Program-made: the position numbers and the translations under genes
Notes under the pieces: generated by a model
The model's input: the letters and a program-made list of their open reading frames with translations, nothing else
What the model was told of the DNA's origin: nothing
The model's database searches: none
In this document: one piece after another, positions 2,900-58,989 of the stretch
Layout of the letters: every line of letters starts with the position of its first letter
How positions within the stretch are numbered: the first letter of the stretch is position 1
NCBI GenBank assembly: GCA_965649765.1
Contig: OZ287748.1
Coordinates: forward strand, 99,014,001-99,078,000
Reading direction: 5' to 3'
DNA: 64,000 bases
Origin: Bispira polyomma
Lineage: Eukaryota

Positions 2900-4616
2900 T
2901 TTCTCACAACGAATTGACATTACTCGACACTTTTGGGTTCTCACAGTTTATCTCCGCTTCAACCCACATCCACAATAACATACTCGATCTTTGTAATCGC
3001 AAGACTAAATTCAAATCTCATCAGAGAATCATGGGTAACTGATGGGATTTCAGATCACCTAGCAACCTTTGCCTATTTAAATTTACCAATACCTGCCTCA
3101 CATAAACCTTGTGTCATAAAATACAGAAACATCAGAAAAATCCATATAAACAAATTTAGAGACGATATTCTGGAAACTAACCTCATCAAACATTCATGCA
3201 AAAATGCTGAAAGCCTAAGCTTACAATATAACCACTGCCTTTCTACTATCCTTGAAAAACAGGCACCATGGGTATCTAAAACCCTTCCTCCAACCAACCC
3301 CCATGAATGGACCAACGCTGCCAGTACCAGAGGCCAAAAGACGCAAATGCCAACTTGAGCGTCAATGGCAACGCACAAAATCCTCCTTAGACAGAAGCCG
3401 TTACCGTATCGCCACAAATAATTACAACAGGCTAATAGCTGATGCCAAAAAGCAACATTACGACTCCGTCATCAATGAAAATTGGGATAATCCCAAAAGG
3501 TTATGGGCCTCCATAAACAAAATTCTACATCAAACATCAGAAAAAGTTCTCCCCATAAACCACTGCCTTACTTTTTTAGCCGAAAAATTTGGAAAATTTT
3601 TCATAGAAAAAATCAGCAACATTTGTGACACCTTCCCAACGATACATCATTTCAATCCTCCAGCCCCAGGATATAAGGTTTGTAACCTGTTTCATTTCAG
3701 TACACTGTCAGAGCTTGAAATTCTGAAACTCATTAAATCCTCTACTATTAAATCTTGTAAATTAGATACCATCCCAGCAGTTATTCTAAGTCAATGTCTA
3801 GACATTCTAGTCACACCCATAACAAACATATTAAATTTTTCTCTTCGGGACGGTGTTTTTCCCACCTGTTTCAAGACGGCAAATGTAACTCCCTTGATTA
3901 AAAAAAAAGGGCTTGATAAAAACCAACTCAAAAACTACAGACCAGTATCAAACCTAAGCTTTATCTCAAAAGTTATCGAGAAAGCTGTAGCTCAACAAAT
4001 TTCTGACCACCTGAATAGACAAAACATTGAAAATCGCCACCAGTCTGCTTATAGAAAATTTCACTCTACAGAAAGTGCTCTTTTTTCCATTAGCAATGAT
4101 ATCAATCTTGCACTAGACCGCAACGACACAGTGGCCCTCACCCTTCTGGATCTCTCAGCTGCATTCGACACCCTTGATCATGTCCTGCTCTGCGACACTC
4201 TCAAGCAGTGGTTTGGTATAAATGGCAGTGTCCTTAAATGGATCAGATCCTACCTTACTCTTAGGGCACAAAGAATTAAATTAGATGATCACCTATCCAC
4301 TGTCATCAATAAACACAGTATCAAACACCACATGTCTATCTCTCTCTCAATCCACAAAATGCAAATACTAACATAGACCTACTTGCAGACTGTCTGTCTG
4401 ACGTCCAGGCGTGGATGAACTACTCCAAATTAAAACTTAATCCTGACAAACCAGAATTCATCCTCATAGGAAACAAGAAAAACAGTGAACTCCCAAAATC
4501 TCTGTTTCCCATCTCCCTGCTGGGAAAAGACATACTACCTTCCAAAAATGCTAAAAACCTGGGTGTCACTTTCGATTCAGCTTTTTCGTTTGATACTCAT
4601 ATTGCCAACATCTGTC
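2900..4616 (+). pseudogene. L2/CR1-group LINE ORF2 remnant (APE endonuclease C-terminus + RT), internally deleted
   Basis: ISDH endonuclease motif (ORF 2933-3358); NYRPVSNLSFISK, QSAYRK, LLDLSAAFD (ORF 3252-4376); KLNPDK; highly similar to the 29.6-31.7 kb copy; ends abruptly at 4616. Confidence 0.92.
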
Positions 4617-26380: not shown

Positions 26381-29208
26381 AGCACTGGTCACACAAAGTA
26401 CATTCGGGTTTACGTTTAAATGTTAGTTTTTTTTAAGAAATGTAAGCAAATGGAAATTATCAAAGTGTAATTGAAGAAAACATAACAAACACGTTTGGTA
26501 CACACAATTAATATATTTGATAGCCGTTTCAATTAAGTTTGTAACTTTAGCCACGTTATTAATTACTTTTGATCTTATAACCCTCGTTTTAAATAGGTTG
26601 CATTCGATTAATTTATGTCTTTCACGTTTCTGGTTATCATTTGGATGTATAGTATGTCTTTGGATGTATAGTATGTCTCAGACCTCAGACGAGAGTTGGC
26701 CGATACGGCCTTTGTCAAGTCTCCTGCTGATAATGCAACGGATCTATACACGCAGTACTGTGCCGACCTACAATCTCTCCTAGAACGCCATGCTCTGTGT
26801 AAGTCTAAGATATTGAAGAAGCCTGTACCTGAGTGGATTACTGGTAGGTACCGAGAGTTGAAGATGCTGCGTAGACAAGCTGAACGGACATGGCGCCGTA
26901 ACAAAACTACCGCAAACAGGTCGCGACTACGCCAATGCATCACCAGGTGCAATAACACCATCAATGATGTCAAACGTATATACTACACCAACATGATCAC
27001 AGAAAGCGAGTGTGACTCAAAGAAACTCTGGGAGAAATTAAACAGCACCCTACACCGGAAAAAACAGACTATACTACCCGACAACAGCAATAGTAAATCA
27101 CTGGCAAACATTTTTAGTACTTTTTTTACTGATAAAATTACCAGAATCTGTGATAGTTTCACATCAGCTGCCCCAAATGCTCCTTTACCATCAGCTCCAC
27201 CAACCATCTTCAACCGTTTCTCCACAGTAACTGTTGATGAGGTTAGGAAAATTATACTTACATCACCCATAAAATCTTGCTTGTTAGATCCGTGGCCTAC
27301 ATTCCTTGTTAAGGAATGTATTGACATTTTATTGCCCTCAATCACCAAACTTGTTAACCTCTCATTGGTCAATGGCGTCTTTCCAAATGATTTTAAAAAA
27401 GCCATTGTCACTCCTTTAATAAAAAAATCTTCTCTCCCAAAGGCTGACTTGAAAAACTACCGTCCTGTCTCAGGCCTTTGCTATATCTCTAAGTTGGTTG
27501 AACGCATGGTCGCCTTATAGATCAAACAACATATCGATGTTAGTAATCTATGCAATAAGTATCAGTCAGCGTACAGAAGTGGTCATTCTACAGAGACTGC
27601 ACTACTCTGCATCAAAAATGATGTTCATATATCTTTATCTAAAGGTATGCCTACTGCCTTAGTACTGCTGGATCTGTCGGCGGCATTTGATACTATTGAT
27701 CACAAAGTTCTTCTTGAGTGGCTATCGTCTTGGTTTGGTATCAACGCTACTGCACTTAAATGGTTCACGGCGTATTTGTCTGATAGATTCCAATCAGTCA
27801 AAATTGGCACCATCTTGTCCGACCCTACATGGTTAAAATTTGGGGTTCCCCAGGGCTCAGTCCTGGGTCCTATTTTGTTCTCAATGTTTACCACCCCACT
27901 CAGCAAGATCATTGCTGCATACAAAAACATAAACTTTCACTTCTATGCGGATGATACCCAATTGTACATCCACCTTACACCCGATTCTGCCCAGGCAGCT
28001 TTCACCTCCTTACAGAACTGCCTTGTCGATGTACAACACTGGATGGCAGCAAATAAACTCAAGCTGAACCCTGATAAGACCGAGTTTATTTTGTTTGGCT
28101 CCAAGTTGCAACGGGAAAAGCTGTCCAGCTGTTTCCCAGTTGATATTCTTGGCAGCAGGCTTTTCCCAGCTGACAAAGTACGCAACCTGGGCGTGTTGTT
28201 TGACTCTGAATTCTCCTTCTCCAACCATGTTGCATCCGTGTGTAGATCATTTTTTGTTGGCCTCCGTGATTTCAGGTGAATTAGGCGTTATCTAACCAAA
28301 TCCACTGCAATCACTGTTGCCAACGCCTTGGTCAGCAGTAGGCTTGATTACTGCAACTCTCTGTTCCGTTCCCTATCTTGTAGTGACCTCAAACGTCCCC
28401 AGAACGTTCAACACTCATTGGCTCGCATCGTGGCCAAAACTTCTAAATTTTCTCATATTACTCCTGTACATTAGTCACTCCACTGGCTCCCAATAAAATA
28501 TCGGGTTGCTTTCAAAATTGCAACAATTATATACAAATTTCTAAATTCTGGATCACCCACCTATTTCAGCTCCCATCTATCCAAATATACATGCTCAGTC
28601 AGGACTAGGCGCAGTAACCCTAATAAGTTATATCTTAACATTCCCACTTTCGACCCTCGCATCCACAAATCCAAAGTACATTTCAATCATTGCCTTGCTC
28701 ACGATGGCCCCTTCATATGGAACAGCCTGCCTGATCATGTTCGCTTGGCTCAAACGTTCTCCTCTTTTAGGAGTAAACTGAAGGCATACCTTTTCGAACA
28801 GGCCTTTCCACCTTAGCCATCGCAACCATCCCGGTAGTCTCTCTCGTTATGACCACCATCCTTCCCCCATTTTTGATTTTTTTGATTAATGCTTAGATTA
28901 GTTGCGCCTTAGAATTTGTTGTAAGCGCTATAAAAGTACGATTAGATTAGATTAGTGCCATTTTTTACCTTCATATACTCACTTAAGACATGTCAGACAT
29001 CTCATATGTTTCTTCCAAACTAACCAACCACTTCAATGGAGAGTGTTGAAAATGGCCCCAAATGTAGCTTTGTTTCGTCCTGCTCAAAATGATGGTTTTT
29101 TCTGATGTTGTACTTATGCAAGTATACGTTCCACTATGCCTAATAGGTTCACTACTCAAATAAAGTTTTTGTGCGCAATCAAAACATCAGTCCAGTGTGA
29201 CCGGGGCT
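26381..29208. mobile_element. Harbinger MITE split by a LINE insertion
   Basis: Left end AGCACTGGTCACAC, right end GTGTGACCGGGGCT; left part similar to 16492-16730. Confidence 0.55.
26680..28955 (+). mobile_element. 5'-truncated L2/CR1-group LINE, RT domain nearly intact
   Basis: NYRPVSGL, LLDLSAAFDT, GVPQGSVLGP, YADDTQ, KLNPDKTE, SRLDYCNSL, LHWLP; a few nonsense codons (27518, 28277); tail GCGCCTTAGA..AAGCGC + (GATTA)n. Confidence 0.95.
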
Positions 29209-29633: not shown

Positions 29634-31727
29634 ATTATTATTATTATTATGGATTTTTAACGCGCTTTATTGATGCTAGGCATCTTCTAAAGCGCAACAG
29701 CAGAATCATTAGTCCAATCATTAAGTCCGTGGAAATTGCAAAGTCGTAAGGAAGGAAGTGGGAGCGTGCACGAGGAAAGCTAAGGTGGGTAGGCAAGATT
29801 AAAAAGATAGGTTTTAAGCTTTTTCCTAAAACCGATAAGTGTATCAACTGATCTGAGGTCGACTGGGAGACTGTTCCATAACCGTGGAGCTGCAGTGGAG
29901 AATGCTCTGAAACCCGCCTTTCTGATTGGTCTGACCGAAGTGACAGAAAGTCTGTTTCCTCTCTTACGGTTACTGAAGGAAAGAAGGGAGGCAAGGTAGG
30001 GTGGCTGTTGAGTGACTACAGCCTTAAAAGTGGTAACGTGAATCTTAACAAAATTCGAGATTCAATGGGCAACCAGTGTAATTTTTTGAGGTAAGGAGTG
30101 ACATCTGTGCGACAACCCAGGCGAAAAATGACCCTACATAGGTAGTTTTGGATGGACTGGAGCTTTTTAATGTTTGACTTGTTTGCTTCGTACAAGAGAG
30201 AATTGCAGTAGTCGAGGCGGCTACTCACAAGGGCATTTGCCACAGTTATCGCTGTGTCCATGGACAAGTGGTTTCTGATTCTTTTGATGTCACGTATGTG
30301 GTAATAGCAGGAGCGACAGATGTTGGCAACATGCGTATCAAACGAAAAAGCTGAATCAAAAGTGACACTCAGGTTTTTAGCATTTTCGGAAGGTAGTATG
30401 TCTTTTCCCAGCAGGGAGATGGGAAACAAAGATTTTAGGAGTTCACTGTTTTTCTTGTTTCCTATGAGGATGAATTCTGTTTTGTCCGGGTTAAGCTTTA
30501 GTTTGGAGTAGTTCATCCACGCCTGGACATCAGACAGACAGTGTGCAAGTAGGTCTATGTTAGTATCTGCATTTTGTGGATTGATGGAGAGATAGACTTG
30601 AGTGTCGTCTGCATACATGTGGTGCTTTATATTGTGTTTATTGATGACAGTGCTGAGAGGATGTGTATAAAGGGTGAAAAGTGGAGGACCAAGGACGGAT
30701 CCCTGGGGTACTCCATATGGAAGTTTTATGGAAGATGATAGGTGATCATCTAGTTTAATTCTTTGTGCTCTAAGAGTAAGGTAGGATCTGATCCATTTAA
30801 GGACACTGCCATTTATACCGAACCACTGCTTGAGAGTGCCGCAGAGCAGAACATGATCAATAGTGTCAAAAGCAGCTGTGAGATCTAGAAGGGTGAGGGC
30901 CACTGTGTCGTTGCGGTCCAGTGCAAGATTGATATCATTGCTAATTGAAAAAAGGGCACTTTCTATAGAGTGAAATTTTCTATAAGCAGACTGATGGCGA
31001 TTTTGAATGTTTTGTCTATTAAGGTGGTCAGAAATTTGTTTAGCTACAGCTTTCTCGATGACTTTTGAGACGAAGCTGAGGTTTGACACCGGTCTGTAGT
31101 TTTTGAGCTGGTTTTTATCAAGCCCTTGTTTTTTAATCAAGGGAGTTACGTTTGCCGTCTTGAAACAGGTGGGAAAAACACCATCCCGAAGAGAAAAATT
31201 TAATATATTTGTTATGGGTGTGACAAGAATGTCAAGACATTGACTCAGTATAACTGCTGGGATGGGATCTAAGTCACAAGATTTAATGGTAGAGGATTTG
31301 ATGAGTTTCAGAACTTCAGGCTCTGACAGTGTACTAAAATGAAACAGGTTACAAACCTTATATCCTGGGGCTGGAGGGTTGAAGTGATGTATCGTTGGGA
31401 AGGTGTCACGAATTTTGCCGATTTTTTCAATAAAAAATTTTCCAAATTTTTCTGCTAAAAAAGTAAGGCAGTGGTTTATGGGGAGAACTTTCTCTGATGT
31501 TCGATGTAGAATTTTGTTTATGGAGGCCCATAACCTTTTGGGATTATCCTGATTTTCAGTGATGATGGAGTCGTAGTGTTGCTTTTTGGCATCAGTTATT
31601 AACCTGTTGTAATTATTTGTGGCGATACGGTAACGGCTTCTGTCTAAGGAGGATTTTGTGCGTCGCCATTGACGCTCAAGTTGGCGTTTGCGTCTTTTGG
31701 CCTCTGTAATGGCGGCATTGGTCCATA
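29634..31727 (-). mobile_element. 5'-truncated L2-type LINE with open RT frame and complete 3' tail
   Basis: ORF 30016-31140 with GVPQGSVLGP and YADDTQ; frameshifted C-terminus RAFSTAAPRLWNSLP; stem-loop tail and (TAA)n; same family as 2900-4616. Confidence 0.95.
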
Positions 31728-35758: not shown

Positions 35759-36466
35759 TTAGAATTTTGAAGAAATTATAGAAGCAAAGGTAGAGGGGAT
35801 AATAGAAGCAGCGTGGGAGGTTGATTGAAGATAAGCCCAAACTGCATCTGATTTCCAACATCCATGTTTCTGAATGTGTTGGAGTTGTACATTTGAATTG
35901 AAGGCTAGTGATGCACCTGATCGCCTAAAACAATGAAAAGAGTGTCCCTCATGGGGAATGTTGAGATATGTCAGTATATGTTTTAAAGCAATTCTTAATT
36001 TTGTGTCTGTTAGACATTTCCCTCTATCTGAGGGGTCCGCCAGCAGTGGAGCCTTGCTAGACATTGGAAATTTGTTAAATAGGGTTTTTGCTGAAGTAAC
36101 AGGGCATAACCAGGGATTGCTTAAAGCAGGTAGTTGTATTATATCTGTATGTGATCTTTTTTGGTTTGTCTTCGACCATTTTAGGATCAAATGTATGCCA
36201 GGGTGTGCAAACAGCACATCATTTCTGGTTATATGTCTAGTTGGATCAAAAGAAGTTCCACAAGTGGAAGTTATGTTCGAGATCCTCAAAAAACCAAAAT
36301 AAGCAAAAAGAAAGGCTGTCCTGAATAATTCAGGGCAATACAACTGGTTAGAAGCTTTTGAAATTTCCAATAATTGGTGTAGGTCGAAGACGCCCTTGAC
36401 CTTTGGTGAGAATTTTGATGATAAGTCTATTGATTTTTGGTAAATTTTCTGGTGTTGCTTGTGCAA
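35759..36466 (-). CDS. Tyrosine recombinase catalytic domain of a DIRS/Ngaro-type retroelement
   Basis: Open 235-aa frame with FLRIS (R), WSKT (K), CPV, HCFRRSGA (HxxR), HGCWKSDA, WAY (Y). Confidence 0.9.
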   Translation of the reverse strand: MHKQHQKIYQKSIDLSSKFSPKVKGVFDLHQLLEISKASNQLYCPELFRTAFLFAYFGFLRISNITSTCGTSFDPTRHITRNDVLFAHPGIHLILKWSKTNQKRSHTDIIQLPALSNPWLCPVTSAKTLFNKFPMSSKAPLLADPSDRGKCLTDTKLRIALKHILTYLNIPHEGHSFHCFRRSGASLAFNSNVQLQHIQKHGCWKSDAVWAYLQSTSHAASIIPSTFASIISSKF

Positions 36467-48413: not shown

Positions 48414-49114
48414 CTAAAAGTAAAATAACAGGGTTGGTATTACAATACAAAAGTTAAAGGTATTACTTAGTAATTGCATAAATGCCAACATTATTTTAAC
48501 ATTAGCTATTGTTAATATTAATATTGATCAATTGCTTTGTTAATTCGATAAATCGATATACTAATATTTATTGATCGATGTAATAACTGAACAAATAGAA
48601 AAACAACACTTTAGTTTGCCTTAGTCTACAACTATCTATAACTGTTTCACTGCTTTTTAGCTGAGAGTTCATTGTCATGTGACGGAAATCACAACATCAA
48701 AGTATTTTTCACTCACTGACGGATGTTTAAATACTGAATAATTACCAATAAATCAAAATATTAAATATATATGTGTATCCGTACAGATTAGATGAATGTA
48801 AAAAATAACTGGGCCAATTCATATGTAATGTCTACTACAGAACATAAGTGCCAAGTAACAAAATTGCAAAGCTTGTATAAAAAGTCGATCAGTATTTTTG
48901 TGACATTTACAGTGCATACATATTATCTGTTGACCTTGGATGACCAGAGTAACGCATCTCGGCTAATGGCTCCAATAATAATTTTTATGTTTAAAGTTAT
49001 CACAAATATTGAGTTACCTTAATACTGTGCTAATTTACAAAGATTTTACAGATTGAACTACTTATTATTTCAAAATTACCTCTAAAACATGTAGGTGTTG
49101 TTCATGGTACTCAC

Positions 49115-50847
49115 CTTGTTCAATTTGGCCAGAAATAGTTGCTTTGTCAAAGTACTCGTGAATATTGGCAGTTGATAGTCATTTCCATTCACTCCCCATA
49201 CACCAGCAGATTGAATTAATTGGCCAGTGTGATGCAACATATCATTCATATAAACAAAAGCTTTTCCTTTTAAGGTTTTTGAATCAACATCCACCATGTT
49301 GCCTCGATATTTTACTCGTACAACTACTTCCATTTGGTTCACTTTACAATCCCTTAAAATCGGATCAGCCTCCCATGTATTGCCTACAATCTTGATCCTT
49401 CCCTGTTTTGTCTCTACATTTTGATAATCTAGCCTCAGTTGGCCAGATATTTCAAAGTGCTTAGTATCCCCAAAAGCTTTCAAACTTTCTGCAGGCACCC
49501 ACTCCTCACACACCGTCTTCATTCCCTGGTTCTGCAGCCATATAATCTCCCCTTTAAACTGGTATGGACTTAGTGTAAGGTCTTCAGCCTGTGCAAATCC
49601 AGTGTAGGTATTCCCAGAAACAAAGACTGGTCTGTATTTAGGTTGGTCATCCATTACTGTCGAACTTTGAGGCTTAACTTGCCCAAAACTGTTACAGGAC
49701 AAAGTTCCTCTTCCCAAGGAACTTTGATGACACAATTTGTACTGTTACAGGCAAAGAACTTCTTTATAGTGTTGTTACAAGTCAAGGCAGTCGATTCTGT
49801 CAACATCTCAAAGATATCTTTTTGTTCACTGTGCTTTCTCATAATACCAACTAAATTTTTTAAGAACCAAGACCCTTGTTTATTTGATACATAGCTTTGT
49901 TTTGTGTGCATTGTTGCATAGGCAACCAAGATATCTTTTCTGGTAATGGATGGCAACAATGTTGGTTTGTTGTCTTCATTATCGGATTGTGGACTTAAAT
50001 CAACACGTACAGCAGCTGCATGTGTGTCGTCGGCACCTCGACATGCTTGAAAAAAAAAGCATTTTGGAACATTTTTTAATGAGGCCACATTATTATGTGT
50101 AAAGGTGTTTATTATCTCTTCTTGAGTTATCACACAAACCTCATTGTTACACATTTCATCCTCTTGTCCATCCGTCCCTTGCTGACACATAATGATTCCT
50201 TTGTCAGTCCCATGGCTCAGTACAAACATGATGAATTTGTCATACTTTCTGTTTTCCTTTAAAAAGAGTTGAATATTTGATAGAGCTTTCCTGAACTGTT
50301 GACTGCTCAAATTTCTAAATGTTGACCCAAATAAATCTGTCTTCACATCAAAATTAAACATGTCACTTTTAAAGAGGTTTTCAAGCGACTCTATATCTTC
50401 CTTGTAGCCTAATAAAACCCGATTTTCGTCTCCCAATACTAATTCCTCAGGGATGAAGTTAGCCATAATAATACAAATACCCTTTCCTCCAGTAGGGTAT
50501 CTACTGGAATCCACATTACCAGAGGGGCTGCTCTCCTGTGTACCCAAATGAGGGAAGCCATGTGTATGTTGGCTGTCATATCTACTATTTTCTGGTGCCG
50601 GGGCAGAGATGTTCGTTGTAGTCTCACTGGTATAACGTATGTTATCCTGGCTACTTATTCTGTTGCCCTGTGTAGGGGAGTCATGTTGTGTATGTTTACC
50701 GTCGTCTTTACTCCCATTTTCTGGTGCCAGCGCAGAGGTGCTTGGGGTAGTCGCACTGGTATTAGGTTTGTTATCTCGGCTACTTGATTTGTTGCCCTGT
50801 TGTTCCAACTTATTGGACTTCCCAAAGCATGAGAGAAGTCGAGACAT
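49115..50847 (-). CDS. Caspase-like cysteine protease (C14A fold), main exon, with frameshifted C-terminal extension
   Basis: KGICIIMAN, FIMFVLSHG (50209-50217), PKCFFFQACRG (50035-50049), DILVAYAT, GSWF; second frame 49735-49115 ends at canonical donor AAG|GTGAGT. Confidence 0.9.
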
Positions 50848-51352: not shown

Positions 51353-53219
51353 TACGGAAGAGTATAAGGGCCACCTTTTTTTTTTTTTTTTTTTTTTTTT
51401 TGAATTGTCGAGATAGTATCTCGATTAATCGAGATAATTTAGATGAAATTTTTTTTTATTTTTGAATTGTCGAGATAATATCTTGATAAATCGAGATAAT
51501 TTAGAAACAATTTTTTTTTTTTTGAATTGTCGAGATAATATCTCGATAATTCGAGATAATTAAAAGGAATTTTCTTTTAATTGTCACCATATTAATTATC
51601 CACCATGGAGAAGGAAGGTGTGTGATTGGCCAACTGAACAGCCAACATGGAAAAGGACACAAACAGTCATCGGGTCAAAGTTAATCAGCAGTCACAGAGA
51701 TCAAAAGTAGTTAATTAGCATATAGTCATGGGGTCAAAAGTAGTTAATCAGGGCAAGACACAAACCGTCATAGATGTCAAAAGTAGTTAATTAGGGCTAG
51801 ACACAAACAGTCATAGAGGTCAAAAGTAGTTAATCAGCAAACAGTCATAGGGTCAAAAGTAGTTAATCAGGGCAAGATATAAACAGTCAGAGTTAGAGTC
51901 AAAAGTAGGTAATCAGGCTTTTAACAAAAGTCAATTTCAACAAAATTGGTCAGTATTTATCCTTTTATCTACTAATTACAATTTTAGGTGACCAAGAAGT
52001 TAGGGCCATTTTAACATAATTAGGTTAACCATGAGTATAGATAACACAGTGACTTTGAGGTCACCTTACTAAACTATAGAGAATTACCATTTTAAATTAC
52101 CAAGGGTGACTTAAAGTCAACATAATGTGAATGACTTTAAGGTTAACATTAACTATAATAACCATGCTTTTAAGGTTAACTTTAATTAGGAAAAGTAGAA
52201 TGACTTAATGTCATCTACCCATTATAGCATACTACTAGTAAAGAAGAGACTTAAGCTCATCTTACATTCAGTTTAAGTTACTTAAATCTTTACTAGTAAC
52301 TCAGCAGTTTTAGTTAACGCAACCTTAAAGGCTACCTTTTAAAATAAACTGCCATTTATATTTAAGGGATTACTTGTAGTATGTTACAAATGCGTTATAT
52401 ACATAATTTACTAAAATGCCCAATCGCTATGCTATCAACTATTGTACATTGTAAAATAAAATATATTATACCAAAAAAAGAGAAAATCTTCTTAATTATC
52501 TCGATTTATCAAGATATTATCTCGACAATTCAAAAAAAAAAATAGGTAATACTGACCAATTTTGTTAAAATTGACTTTTGTTGAAAGCCTGATTAACTAC
52601 TTTTGACCCTATGAGTGTTTGCTGATTAACTACTTTTGACCTCTATGACCGTTTGTGTCTGGCCCTAATGAACTACTTTTGACCTCTATGACTGTTTGTG
52701 TCTAGCCCTAATTAACTACTTTTGACATCTATGACTGTTTGTTTCTTGCCCTAATTAACTACTTTTGACCCCAAGACTGTTTGCTGATTAACTACCTTTT
52801 GATCTCTATGACTGTTTGCTGATTAACTTTTGACCCGATGACTGTTTGTGTCCTTCTGCATGTTGGCTGTTCAGTTGGCCACTCACACACCTTCCTTCTC
52901 CATGGTGGATAATTATTTCAATTTATCGAGATAGTATCTCGACAATTCAAAAAAAAAAAAACAATTCTTATTATCTTGATTTATCGAGATATTATCCCAA
53001 CAATTCAAAAAAAATATATATATTTTTTTTCAATTATCTCGATTTATCGAGATATTATCTCGACAATTCAAAAAAAAAATTCTGATTATTTTGATTTTTT
53101 GGAGATATTATCTAGACAATTCAGAAAAAAAAATATTTTTTCCTTATTATCTCGATTTATCAAGATATTATCTCGAGAATTCAAAAAAAAAAAAAAGTTG
53201 GCCCTTTCACTCTTTCATA
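51353..53219. mobile_element. Foldback-like DNA transposon with ~600-700 bp modular inverted arms
   Basis: Tips TACGGAAGAGTATAAGGGCC / GGCCCTTTCACTCTTTCATA; ~60-bp palindromic TCGAGATAATATCTCGA units; 51594-51960 is the reverse complement of 52547-52913; GTCAAAAGTAGTTAAT subrepeats. Confidence 0.9.
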
Positions 53220-53262
53220 CTGTCTGATATTCCACTGAAATTCATAATTTACTCAAGGATAA

Positions 53263-53470
53263 TACGGAAGAGTGAAAGGGCCACATAGCATTCTTGTTGT
53301 AATTTTTTATCTTTATAAATCAATTCAATATTGATGTATCGACTTATGGACCTTGATTTATCAACGTTTTGTCTTAATATATCAACTTAGCTATCTCGAT
53401 TTATCAACTTGTTATGTTAATAAATTCAGATAAGTCGATAAAGACTTTATCAGTTTTCTAGCATAAATGG
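53263..53470. mobile_element. Left end of a second element of the same TACGGAAG family
   Basis: TACGGAAGAGTGAAAGGGCCAC followed by ATCGAC/TCGAT subrepeats. Confidence 0.6.
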
Positions 53471-53989
53471 CTGGGCGACACACATAAAGTTAATAAAAAC
53501 ATTATAGTAATAACAGTTTTGTATTAGTAATAAATATGGTAAAACTAGATGATCTGTTAGATTTTAGCGTTAACTGAGTGTTTTGAGGAATGTATGTATT
53601 TTGGTGGGTCTAAAAAGTGTCCTAATGTGAAACCCACACTGTAATTTACATTTCAGTTTAATCTATAAATACCTCAATTCAGGTCTCTCTCGGCATTTCA
53701 GGCAATATTTGTCTTCTTATGCATGTCAACTCCACGCAAGACATAGTAGAATCTAGGCTTACTTAAGTGTCCCTATCTTTGTACAATCAGTTCATAGGTC
53801 AAAAAGGCATTAAGATACCTTACATGCTCAGTGCGCAAAGTTTATCATCTGTGAACACATGTTAAATGATATATTTGGTAAAAGTTCTATAAATATCCCC
53901 AACAAGTAAGTTTACAAATGAATATATAGCTTATAAAATAAGCCTAGTACCACCAATTCAAAATAACATGTTGAAACTAAGACATAAAT

Positions 53990-54250
53990 CTGTTAACATG
54001 AGCTCACATATAAAAACTATGCTCACAATTTATAGCTTGTGCAGACAGATAAAAATATGTGCTCACAGTTTTTATCTGTTTTTTATCTATGTGCACAATG
54101 TAAAAAACTGTGCTAACGATTTAATAAACTCTGCACACGAGTTAAAAAAACTATGATCCGATTTAATAAACTGTGCTCACTAATTATACACTGTGAGGAC
54201 AAAATAATATGGGTAAAAACAAATTATAATGTCTCCGCCATGTCTCCATA
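53990..54250. repeat. MITE remnant with TGTGCAC-type subrepeats
   Basis: Repeated AAACTGTGCTCAC units ending ATGTCTCCGCCATGTCTCCATA. Confidence 0.5.
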
Positions 54251-56764
54251 CTTTTGCAGGGGCAGTGTTTAGAAAGTATGTAACTCGACTGGCTTACGAA
54301 AGTTACCAGCTAGAAATCAATCTCAAAAAAGAACCCACGTTTGTGCAAAGTATGCTTTTTATACATATAGCTAGATTACGTGTATATTGCAAAGTGCACC
54401 ATTTTTTTGGAAGATTATAACTGTCCAGCATGTGCTTTCAGTTTCAGATATTATGTTGAAGTGTTTATTTCAACACCCACTGTAGGTTGTTTGTATTTGA
54501 GCTGTTTGTAAATTCATTTGGAAAAGGATTTAATATAAATTGTTTTTTTTTTCCATCACTTGTGTAGTTTATTTCCTAGATACATCATTGCAAAATGCTT
54601 TCCTTATTTATAACAATAACTTGTATACTTGAGATGTTTCGTCATACGTATCACTTTATCTCATATGCACCATTTTTCCTTCATATATCATTTTATAGTA
54701 AGTAAAATTAGTCGCTAGCTCCTTGGCCTTTTATGATTCACCAAAAGTCTCCAACTCCACTCAAGTGAACTCAAATGTATAACTCTTTGGTTTACTGAGA
54801 ACTTGGAGAGTGGCAGTGGAGGCTAAAGGTGTAGCAATATTTTTTACTTTATATTGGAGAGCTGTGACGCAATTGAAGCACAGTAATTTATTAAAAATTA
54901 TATCTGTTTGGATAATATAGGATCATGCATTAGTTAATAGCTGTGAAGCAATTAAGGTCCAGTAATAATCACAAATTTTAGATATCTGTTCGTTATGTGC
55001 TGTCATGGTTGACACATTAACATTAAAAATCTGTTTTGAACAATAGACAACACACAAACAGCTGTTTAAATGGACATAAACTGTAATTTATATTATTCAT
55101 TTTGATAGAACTTTCATCGCTGAATGAACATTCCGAGTCTATGCGTCCTCTCTCTCTCTCTCACTAGAGATAAAGGGACCTTAGATTTGAGTTTAAGATT
55201 CTTTGAAAACATTATAATTTTTATATATTATTTATCCAGCAAGGATACTCAAACACCAAAACTGTACAGTGTAGCGTTATGATCCGCCTACCTTAAATAT
55301 AAAAACAACGACTCTGCAGGTATTAGCCTTCATGAAATCTCTAGCATAGACAACATAAAATATTTTCCTTATATTAGTGTACTTTTTCACAACTTCGCCA
55401 ATCTAATTTATTTGACCAGGTTTATTAAACATTGGCAATAAAGAACCTCTGAAATATTAAAGACAGATCACAGCTTGTATAAACTAGACTGTACATGAAC
55501 AACATTTGGCATGCTCATAAGAAATCTTTTTCTGCATTAAATCAAGACCAGGATAGACAACGGATTATAGATATAAATGAACTGATAGAATAGCCTTGCT
55601 TATGGCTCAAGTTTGTTACAAACTCTCTTTAATTTGAAACTAATTTAAGAAATATAATTTCAAATAGACAAGTAGAATTTAGCACAATGTATTCAATTAA
55701 TGTCAAGATATGCTGTGTCCAGCAATGTACGAGTACATCATGACAACATTAAATCTCTTATGTCATATGTTGAATACGTTCAGTATCAAATAAGACTCTC
55801 TTTTCAACTTGAGCCTTAAGAAGGGCGGCATGGACTTAATAGCAAGGTATGAAGCTTTCTCCAAATCCAAGTGTTATTAAAATATTTGTCGTTATAACTT
55901 TTACAAATATACTATGTCAATCTAGCATTATTTATATCTTGCATGCTATATTTAATATTTACAGTACTAGTATTGAGATCAAAGATTTACATGTCTCAAA
56001 TCACTCTATTGTCAGTAAATGTACCATACTTAGCTCTTTATGTTGAATATGCAAATACTGTGTCTTGAATTAAAAATATGTGTGTGTGTTTCAGATTAGC
56101 TAGAAACCATAATATAATAAGCTTGCATAACTAAAAGGGTCGACATCAAGTGTTAAAGTAAAAAAGTGTTATTTCCCCTTTCTTATAAAATAGACTTTCG
56201 CAGGCTCCAGTTTGGAATATATAACAATATTTAAATAAATATATATATATGAAAACAATATACTACCACAGATCAAAATGTTCAATTAAGTTTTTATTGT
56301 TTTCCAGAGTTTCATTATATAATCTCTTCTTCTAGGATTTAAAGTGCCAACTAGCCACTTTTTATAGCAAAGGTACTGTCATCCCGAACCAGCTTTGGTA
56401 GTTCCCCTAGCTGAATACAGGGGCTTTGGGATGATCATTTATCAAAGACCCCAAGGTTCTTTAGCCTGTTACTGGACAAACGACCCACTGAGTGAGGGTT
56501 GGCATTTAACTAGTCACCTGGGAAGCAATAGTACAGTGGTTTCAGTCTATAAAGTTAAAGTAACGTTCAATTCATTGATAATAATGAAAAAGGTATATTT
56601 TATATATGGTAATATTTGAAATAGATAACATACATTTGTAAATATTGCAAGATTGAGCAAAGTACTTATCTTAGGTACTCGGTTCTCATTAAATACTGGA
56701 CTTAGAACCCTGAGATTTTCACATCATTCATAAATTAAATGCCGAAATCCCAATATTGTGCCAA

Positions 56765-57320
56765 ACCTAATCTAACTTTTACAGCAACTTATCTCCATAC
56801 TAGCAGATTCTAAGACGCATGAAACAGAAATATCATTTTCATAATTTCATATAGCTATTAGATGTAAAATGGTCATGACTGTAGAGATGCCAGAATTGGA
56901 AATGAGGCTGAGGTGGAAAAGGCATGATAAAAAGGTAGGTTTTGAGCTTCCTTCAAAATCAAGTAAGTGAGAGGGCAGTGCAAATATCACGAGGCAGATC
57001 ATTCCACAGCTTAGGAGCATCATGTGAGAAACTATTGTAGAAATGGCTTTTTGACCTATAAACTGATCTTACAAAGGTATAGACACTTAAGAAAGCCTTA
57101 TCCGGCCTACTACACCTTGTATTGAGTTGACATGCAAAAGGAGAAAAGTAAGGACTGAAATACCAAGGGAAACCTGAAATGGGGTATTTAAAGATTAAGG
57201 TAGCAGTTTTAAATATTGCCCTATATTTGATAGGCAACCAGTGGAGGGTTTTTTGAATACGGGAGTAATGTGAGTAAACTTAGACTTTCATATTACTATC
57301 CGCACCAAACGGTTTTGGAC
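56765..57320 (-). mobile_element. L2 LINE 3' fragment
   Basis: LHWLPIKYRAIFK...SFSHDAPKLWNDLP; (GATTA)-type tail; duplicated at 63400-63870. Confidence 0.85.
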
Positions 57321-58989
57321 ACACTTTGAAGTACATCATGACAGCATTAAATATGCGTTAAAAAAGTTCTAAATTAAATGTAACTTTCTGATCATCTTGA
57401 GCCTTAAGCAAGGTGACTTGCATTTTATAGCTACAAATGAAGCTTTCCCCTGATCCAGGTTTTTATAAAAATATTTGTTGTTAAACCTTTCACATTGACT
57501 GTTGGTCCATATGTCAATCTAGTTTATATCTGACACGCTGGATTAAACATTTTAAATACTAGTATTGAAGTCAAGATTTACATGTCTTAAATTCCTCCAT
57601 TTTTAGTAAATGTACCGTACTTAGCTCTTACAATGCAAATATCTACAATTGTGTCTGAGGGTGTCTTTTAAATTAAAAAGATATGTGTGTTTCAGATCAG
57701 CGAGAAAACATAATCTTATAAGTTTGCATAACTGAAAGGATCGACAGCATATTTGACTGCGCGATAATATTTAATGAATTGTTATTTTCCCTTCCTTATT
57801 TTTGTTCCGTCAGACCCTTTTAGGAGGTTCCTATTCTGGTATTCCAGGTGATACTTTATTAATATCCTAAGATATGTGTGTATATTAGCACAATTAAAAA
57901 CCTTAACAATCAACACTGAAGGAGAGAGAGAATAATATATTCACATATTACATATTACATTCACAATCACTGTATTTTTACTTTTCCACAGACATAATTT
58001 ATTTATTTTTCTTTTGGAATGAAGAATATAAAGACAAATCACAGGGTTTAATCATAGGTATTTCTTTCTGTATTGCTATTATTACCACAGAAAATTCAAA
58101 TATTTTACATTAACACCAGTCACAAATAAAAGGTTCACTCTTAACGGCATTCTATTTAAATAATGCAGAGTATCTTTTGTAATATGCTAACAGCATCAAT
58201 AAATCCACACACAGTATAAACATTAATGAATATCTTTAACTTTGAGGTTATATGTTTTACAAAGTTATTACATGCAACACTGTCACTGTTGCTAGCCCAT
58301 TCTTTATATATGCAGTACTGGCCAATCGAAAATATCAATTTTTATGTTTTGCATACCTAATATTAATATTTTTAAGCTGAAATTTAGGTTCAGTACTTAA
58401 AAAATCTTTTTCCAAATGATTATTTTATGTAAGCATAGAAAAAACATATGTTTTACTGTTTCAACATCTCCAAATAACAAACACCTATCGTGTGACATAA
58501 GGCCCCACTTACACAATCTCTTTCGTCATGGTAGGATATTACTCAGAAGCTTATAATTAAATTCACACAATTTCTTATCAGAGATATACTTATATGTTTT
58601 ATATTTTGAATCTATATGTTGTGGTATAGTTATAATTATCTAAATTGAACAAATTATTGAAGTATTGCCAAGACTTCGGTTGAATAATCTTTAGTTTGAC
58701 AATTTCTATGTAATGTTCTTTTGTTGATCTATATTTTGGTGTACAAATTAAGGCATTCTGTATATTATCAAGTAGAAGGTAAACGTTTTAGTCCATATTT
58801 TACTCGATAAACTTCACTTGAATAGTTTGATTAGGTTGTCAATTTTGAGAGAATGTATGAATCACAGATTCTGCTTCAATAATTTTTCCTTCCTTATAAC
58901 ATAGACTTTCACAGGCTCCAGGTTCGAATATATAATATTAATAAAAAATATATACATTGTTGACGAATATAATCTTCTGTTTTAAGTAA

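Follow-up and report, generated by a model that had tools for sequence, protein, structure and literature searches.

Specificity for Asp defines caspases and rests on a pair of arginines in the S1 pocket. We describe a clade of caspases in which both arginines are replaced while the catalytic dyad is kept in nearly every member. One copy lies in the DNA analysed here, a stretch of 64,000 nucleotides from Bispira polyomma (the window). The finding is the family; the copy that was flagged is the wrong one to study. Our preferred reading, to which we give about an even chance as a whole, is that the locus is a member of a lineage-expanded clade of true caspases, either broken recently or assembled wrongly, that the S1 pocket was rebuilt once in an ancestor and then kept, and that the intact members would be active proteases with a P1 preference other than Asp. 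The clade descends from caspases and probably resembles them in fold and catalysis. Since both S1 arginines are gone, it should not be filed under Asp-specific caspases.

If this is true, the replacement of both arginines in a conserved animal clade with a retained dyad, seemingly by the same route on two occasions, would amount to a natural switch of specificity within true caspases. Such enzymes would escape the DEVD and IETD substrates of invertebrate cell-death work and probably its Asp-based inhibitors. Proteins of this kind are mis-named in databases ('caspase-2-like').

S1 pocket and catalytic residues

All features of the gene lie on the minus strand. Its first piece is an ORF of 397 aa (49654-50847) with a PF00656 domain (Pfam, E 1.4e-27); it encodes a low-complexity N-terminus, p20, the linker, p10 in large part and the beginning of an insert, and terminates early at a TAA. 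The first-pass annotation had read an intact dyad from the SHG and QACRG motifs. This holds: the catalytic His212 (50212..50214) lies in the former, and Gln267 and the catalytic Cys269 (50041..50049; Cys269 codon, 50041-50043) lie in the latter. The L-x-G-Y-x-x-D motif (50395..50415) has Leu145 (50413-50415) at the site of caspase-1 Arg179, a clade-specific Tyr148 (50404-50406) and the conserved Asp151. The S-Y-V motif (49888..49896) places Val320 (49888-49890) at the site of Arg341.

Preference of caspases for Asp is set by three side chains, Arg87, Gln184 and Arg233 in caspase-7 numbers (PMC4357240). Replacement of both arginines had been proposed from a register aligned by eye, and the same register is returned when a profile built from 12 family members is aligned to the PDB entry of caspase-3 (E 4.5e-33). 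Leu145 falls on caspase-3 Arg64 (equivalent to caspase-1 Arg179) and Val320 on Arg207 (equivalent to Arg341), while the family Tyr, Asp and Gln fall on Thr67, Asp70 and Gln161. Two of the three Asp-selecting side chains are thus replaced and Gln stays. The register is therefore right. Nor is the replacement due to chance, since both arginines are missing from all scorable rows of the clade. An upstream Arg, placed by the annotation three residues before the Gly (ENRVLLG), had been suggested to compensate. The actual distance is four residues; this Arg143 sits in an insertion missing from the sister copy L011, and its column holds Arg or Lys in only 11% of the clade. Compensation is ruled out because the position is not conserved across the clade.

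The clade in the genome and outside it

A search of the genome (1.04 Gb, 75 contigs) gave 22 matches at about 21 related caspase loci, with the domain mostly in one exon. Both arginines are gone from every locus that covers the S1 sites. Caspases of the ordinary kind, with introns in their genes and an S-W-R or similar motif, are encoded in this genome as well. Outside the genome, a word search gave one relative; in the large profile search then run, about 30 among the best 150 hits show the same pattern. The outside relatives that were traced to their source belong to five samples (ERZ22147071, SRR20820736, ERZ23499075, ERZ27279858 and ERZ27264416); one of these, ERZ23499075, was taken from marine biofilm and is cited in PMC6355793. 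A tree built without the S1 motif columns puts genome copies and outside proteins into one clade of 47 rows (FastTree, SH-like 99), which has SH-aLRT 97 in a quick IQ-TREE run on a 24-row subset. Its members are only about 30-40% identical to each other. Several genome paralogs each pair with one outside protein, meaning that the paralogs are older than the species split.

Within the clade the Arg179 site is Leu in 84% of rows, the Arg341 site is Val in 93% and the Thr/Ser site of helix 1 is Tyr in 95%; the helix-1 Asp and the S1 Gln (Gln283) are at 100%. Both S1 arginines are absent from 45/45 scorable clade rows and present in 90/106 other caspase domains. As the 45 rows share ancestry, they count as one event, not 45. 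His and Cys are both kept in 45/47 rows. The only rows to lose either belong to one orthologous pair, L019 and P0021, in which His is lost from both and Cys also from P0021; L019:1042-2262 and P0021 thus make a conserved pseudo-caspase pair inside the clade. Two further members, P0042 (from SRR20820736) and P0052, have an L1 motif that is altered further; ahead of the last strand they carry a long segment, which does not match the insert studied here.

The annotation had pointed to orthologues with the same substitutions and to their dN/dS as a check, and to orthologues all carrying Arg, a sign of pseudogene drift, as the opposite case. Homologues in other species do carry the same replacements, and cross-species dN/dS is 0.13 (CI 0.07-0.21) for L009 and P0002, 0.18 for the insert of L004 and P0010, and 0.25 for L005 and P0001, the other cross-species pairs being saturated. 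The opposite case does not occur: 0/45 scorable clade rows have Arg at either site. Drift of a pseudogene is ruled out as the cause of the arginine loss, which is family-wide, cross-species and accompanied by purifying selection. For the window copy against the broken copy L002, dN/dS amounts to 0.55 for the core and to 0.96 for the insert. The recent duplicates L005 and L006 (G000 C6) are 94% identical with dN/dS of about 2 (interval 0.9-9), possibly a case of positive selection.

The same residue set is found in three proteins of Styela clava (XP_039258481, XP_077971471 and P0160), which have L-x-G-Y-x-x-D, [FY]-V and an intact dyad. They carry the automatic name 'caspase-2-like', and we found no paper on them. 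Two of the Styela proteins were compared outside the S1 segments; their nearest neighbours are Arg-type caspases (37-38% to P0111), and no clade member is among the top eight. Forcing the Styela proteins into the clade was rejected in a quick tree of 27 rows (p-AU 0.02). Convergence would be a better reading of the shared Leu/Tyr/Val set than deep common ancestry, and we regard it as fairly probable. If it is correct, the same three changes happened twice, which argues for a selected new pocket and not for decay. A broader proposal can then be made, tentatively and at somewhat less than even chances. In annelids and ascidians, animal caspases derived from C14A would have abandoned Asp at P1 on at least two occasions, through identical Leu/Tyr/Val substitutions, giving active proteases of a signalling or death pathway apart from Asp caspases, with an uncharacterised beta domain added in one subgroup.

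Some clade members have a CARD-like N-terminus (L012, Atlas 0.90, is a lead), with no Pfam match. Insert-type members, the window copy among them, are without it. In the window copy the N-terminal low-complexity region (50500..50847) contains an in-frame duplication with 129-nt spacing and has no CARD or DED by Pfam. An N-terminal Cys followed by basic residues (50820-50847) is common to this copy, L069 and P0001 and is a possible palmitoylation anchor. In the intersubunit linker, an Asp occurs at +10 to +14 after the catalytic Cys in 23/42 clade proteins versus 62/104 others. At +6 to +10 a conserved [TV]-[QKR]-A-A-[GA] replaces the usual D-x-G-V, with Ala at +9 in 83%. Self-cleavage at this Ala-Ala was considered and set aside as a weak lead only, since in ordinary caspases a structural Gly-Val stands at these positions, and the Styela proteins keep it.

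State of the window copy

The annotation had treated the ORF as a whole caspase. This does not stand, because the copy is frameshifted and the 397-aa ORF stops short of the last core strand. The frameshift (49640..49690) shows as a net 20-nt difference in the DNA alignment with the sister L002. This is best interpreted as a single missing base near 49679, in addition to a length difference that keeps the frame. The second gene piece (49082..49687) is an open frame with no stop down to 49082. It belongs to a downstream ORF (49082-49735), in a different frame from the first, that terminates in the last core strand of p10. This strand (49130..49177), the dimer-interface strand of caspases, is encoded in the second frame only. 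Between it and the last helix of p10 lies a beta-rich insert of about 195 residues (49178..49765), which the frameshift splits. A p10 complete in one frame is absent from the window copy and present in the paralogs L003-L006, L008-L010, L012 and L013. As assembled, without the last core strand, the window copy would be inactive. Its two pieces were analysed separately, and modelling relied on intact paralogs.

A genome search with the downstream ORF returns the same loci as the caspase part. Insert and last strand are in frame with the caspase part in L002-L006, L008 and outside proteins including P0001, P0010 and P0017, so that a separate downstream gene is ruled out. A short intron spanning the break seems unlikely: the GT-AG options found by eye were 22-39 nt long and led into stops. 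Neither piece contains any other stop; by a rough calculation, about 11 and 4 would be expected had they been neutral over half the distance to L002. Hence the break is either recent or a consensus error. It has also to be considered whether the break is functional. The stop of the first piece overlaps the ATG of the second (TAATG, 49656-49652), and stop-restart or frameshifting there could yield either a second chain made of the insert and last strand or a protein of full length; the two open frames fit this too. However, no paralog or outside homologue is interrupted at the same site, loss of one base suffices as an explanation, and open frames are also what one would see in a null allele of recent origin or after an error in the consensus. 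We regard a functional break as the least likely of all the alternatives weighed here, and a recent break or an assembly error as the reading to keep.

The three nearest sisters are broken also: L002 is without its 5' part, L011 ends after SHG, and L069 is a fragment with a stop. Together with the broken window copy this looks like birth-and-death turnover, and the insert subgroup is turning over fast. In the paralog L007 (L007:1273-2355) most of the insert is deleted in frame and the last strand is kept. DNA upstream of the window caspase (about 53200-57970) is 85-93% identical to DNA upstream of L002 (L066, G000 C7), compared with 76-79% for the genes themselves; this could reflect either a repeat common to both or an exchange that took place later. 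A foldback-like element (51386-53199) with long nested inverted repeats and subrepeats of 43 nt and about 60 nt lies upstream of the caspase ATG, at a distance of about 540 bases. Elsewhere in the window Pfam finds three reverse-transcriptase ORFs and one weak tyrosine-recombinase-like ORF (3252-4376, 27647-28279, 30016-31140 and 35759-36466).

Fold, specificity and known relatives

An AlphaFold model of the intact paralog L003 (pLDDT 76.9, pTM 0.67) is closest to caspase-8 (4jj7, Z 24.3) and caspase-3 (Z 23.7), with lower scores for cFLIP (3h13, Z 20.8), MALT1 (19.7) and metacaspases (17.1 or less). The insert occupies residues of about 246-455 of the model and is separate and nearly all-beta. 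The structural alignments match about 215 residues over a span that reaches from residue 1 to about 466, so the chain returns to the core in the last strand and the insert forms a separate part. The insert has no Pfam match and no word-search match, only Atlas 0.75, and was seen in only one subgroup among the clade and outside proteins compared.

The clade resembles canonical caspases (C14A; caspase-3/-7/-8) in sequence, fold, the SHG and QxCxG motifs, the S1 Gln, the final strand motif and, in some members, a CARD-like prodomain. It differs from them by the Leu and Val at the arginine sites, the new Tyr, a mostly single coding exon and, in one subgroup, the insert. Leu at the Arg179 site occurs also in MALT1 and metacaspases. 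The annotation had remarked on a resemblance to meta- and paracaspases (C14B), and this stands for the first site, where Leu and the L-x-G-x-x-x-D pattern of metacaspases are found. It does not extend further: Gln is kept, there is no acid at the sites of MALT1 Asp462 and Glu500, and the closest folds are those of caspase-8 and caspase-3. Two residues before the catalytic Cys the clade has Gln (100%), not the Asp of metacaspases. With MALT1 it shares the caspase fold, the absence of S1 arginines and the helix-1 Asp. It has Gln and Val at the two acid sites, however, and no death domain or Ig domains were found by Pfam around the clade protease, unlike in MALT1. Tree, fold and missing acids rule out a para- or metacaspase identity. 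The genome has a separate MALT1-like gene, L054 (G000:C2:14921988-14925626). Its one open frame (862 aa) matches PF00656 and begins with a region resembling a death domain, so that it looks like an intronless MALT1-type paracaspase.

In clan CD, the choice of P1 is set by helix 1/L1, L4 and L5 (PMC4357240). The ancestral change would have been Arg179 to Leu, Arg341 to Val and Thr/Ser to Tyr on helix 1, with the Gln and the His-Cys dyad retained. TbMCA2 uses helix-1 Cys92 and Asp95 for P1 (PMC4357240). The clade Tyr stands three residues before its Asp as Cys92 stands before Asp95, and this spacing suggests that Tyr probably lines S1. A pocket of Leu, Tyr, Val and Gln, with a single acid, would lack positive charge and would most likely take a neutral or small hydrophobic P1. 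A precedent exists in another, bacterial family of the clan, the MARTX cysteine protease domain (C80), whose hydrophobic pocket accepts Leu (PMC4357240). When all active readings are added together, intact clade members are quite probably active cysteine proteases; a neutral P1 in particular would be right about half of the time. Members with CARD-like prodomains would be activated by clustering, as in initiator caspases. In insert-type members the extra beta domain would sit in the last substrate-flanking loop, probably as a ligand- or substrate-binding module.

Other suggestions can be made regarding what the altered pocket does. If the helix-1 Asp is exposed by the loss of Arg179, with the Tyr stacked against the side chain of P1, intact members could be active on basic P1 residues (Arg or Lys), as MALT1 or gingipains are. 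This Asp is conserved in all clade rows, and the Leu is shared with MALT1 and metacaspases. One helix-1 Asp suffices in gingipain R, and MALT1 uses three acids including helix-1 Asp365 (PMC4357240, PMC4626109). But the other two acids of MALT1 are replaced by Gln and Val in the clade, the Tyr one turn before the Asp may fill the pocket, and the Asp may be structural, being conserved in ordinary caspases too (98%). We find a basic P1 rather unlikely. Specificity for Asp or Glu could survive through another basic residue: Gln is kept, and Lys or Arg stands in the column after Leu in 28% of clade rows. No conserved basic residue lies near either site, however, and the share of rows with Arg at both canonical positions is 0%, which leaves this suggestion hardly any probability.

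A third kind of suggestion is that the clade consists of regulatory pseudo-caspases with little or no turnover, serving as partners in heterodimers or as scaffolds in the manner of cFLIP. In its favour are the loss of both specificity residues, the CARD-like prodomains, which permit scaffold roles, and the persistence of the pair that has lost the dyad. Pseudo-caspases of the cFLIP type likewise combine a caspase fold with an altered active site, but known pseudo-caspases usually lose Cys or His, whereas almost every row of the clade retains the dyad, the Gly that follows His, and the Gln. Its replacements are fixed at particular residues and not free. A clade of pseudo-caspases seems to us as doubtful as one of proteases for basic P1, and we prefer active proteases with a non-Asp P1. 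From the prodomains and the fast turnover only, we infer a role in immune or death signalling parallel to that of Asp caspases. A gasdermin match (G000:C14:9745685-9746065, E 1.9e-8) is a candidate substrate.

No paper on the clade was found in a literature search without most subscription journals. A 2024 survey of lophotrochozoan caspases, including 17 annelids, reports unusual prodomains (PMC11463336); its annelid section and the passages that term searches retrieve contain nothing on S1 residues or on such a clade. A survey of bivalve caspases notes dyad changes only (PMC7836458).

One further observation concerns the mitochondrial sequence of the same assembly (L065, G000 C75), in which the genetic code of cox1 and the position of cox2 after it indicate a protostome-type invertebrate. 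In it cox1 and then cox2 adjoin, no tRNA being detected between them, and a repeat-containing non-coding stretch comes after cox2. The cox1 gene uses the invertebrate mitochondrial code.
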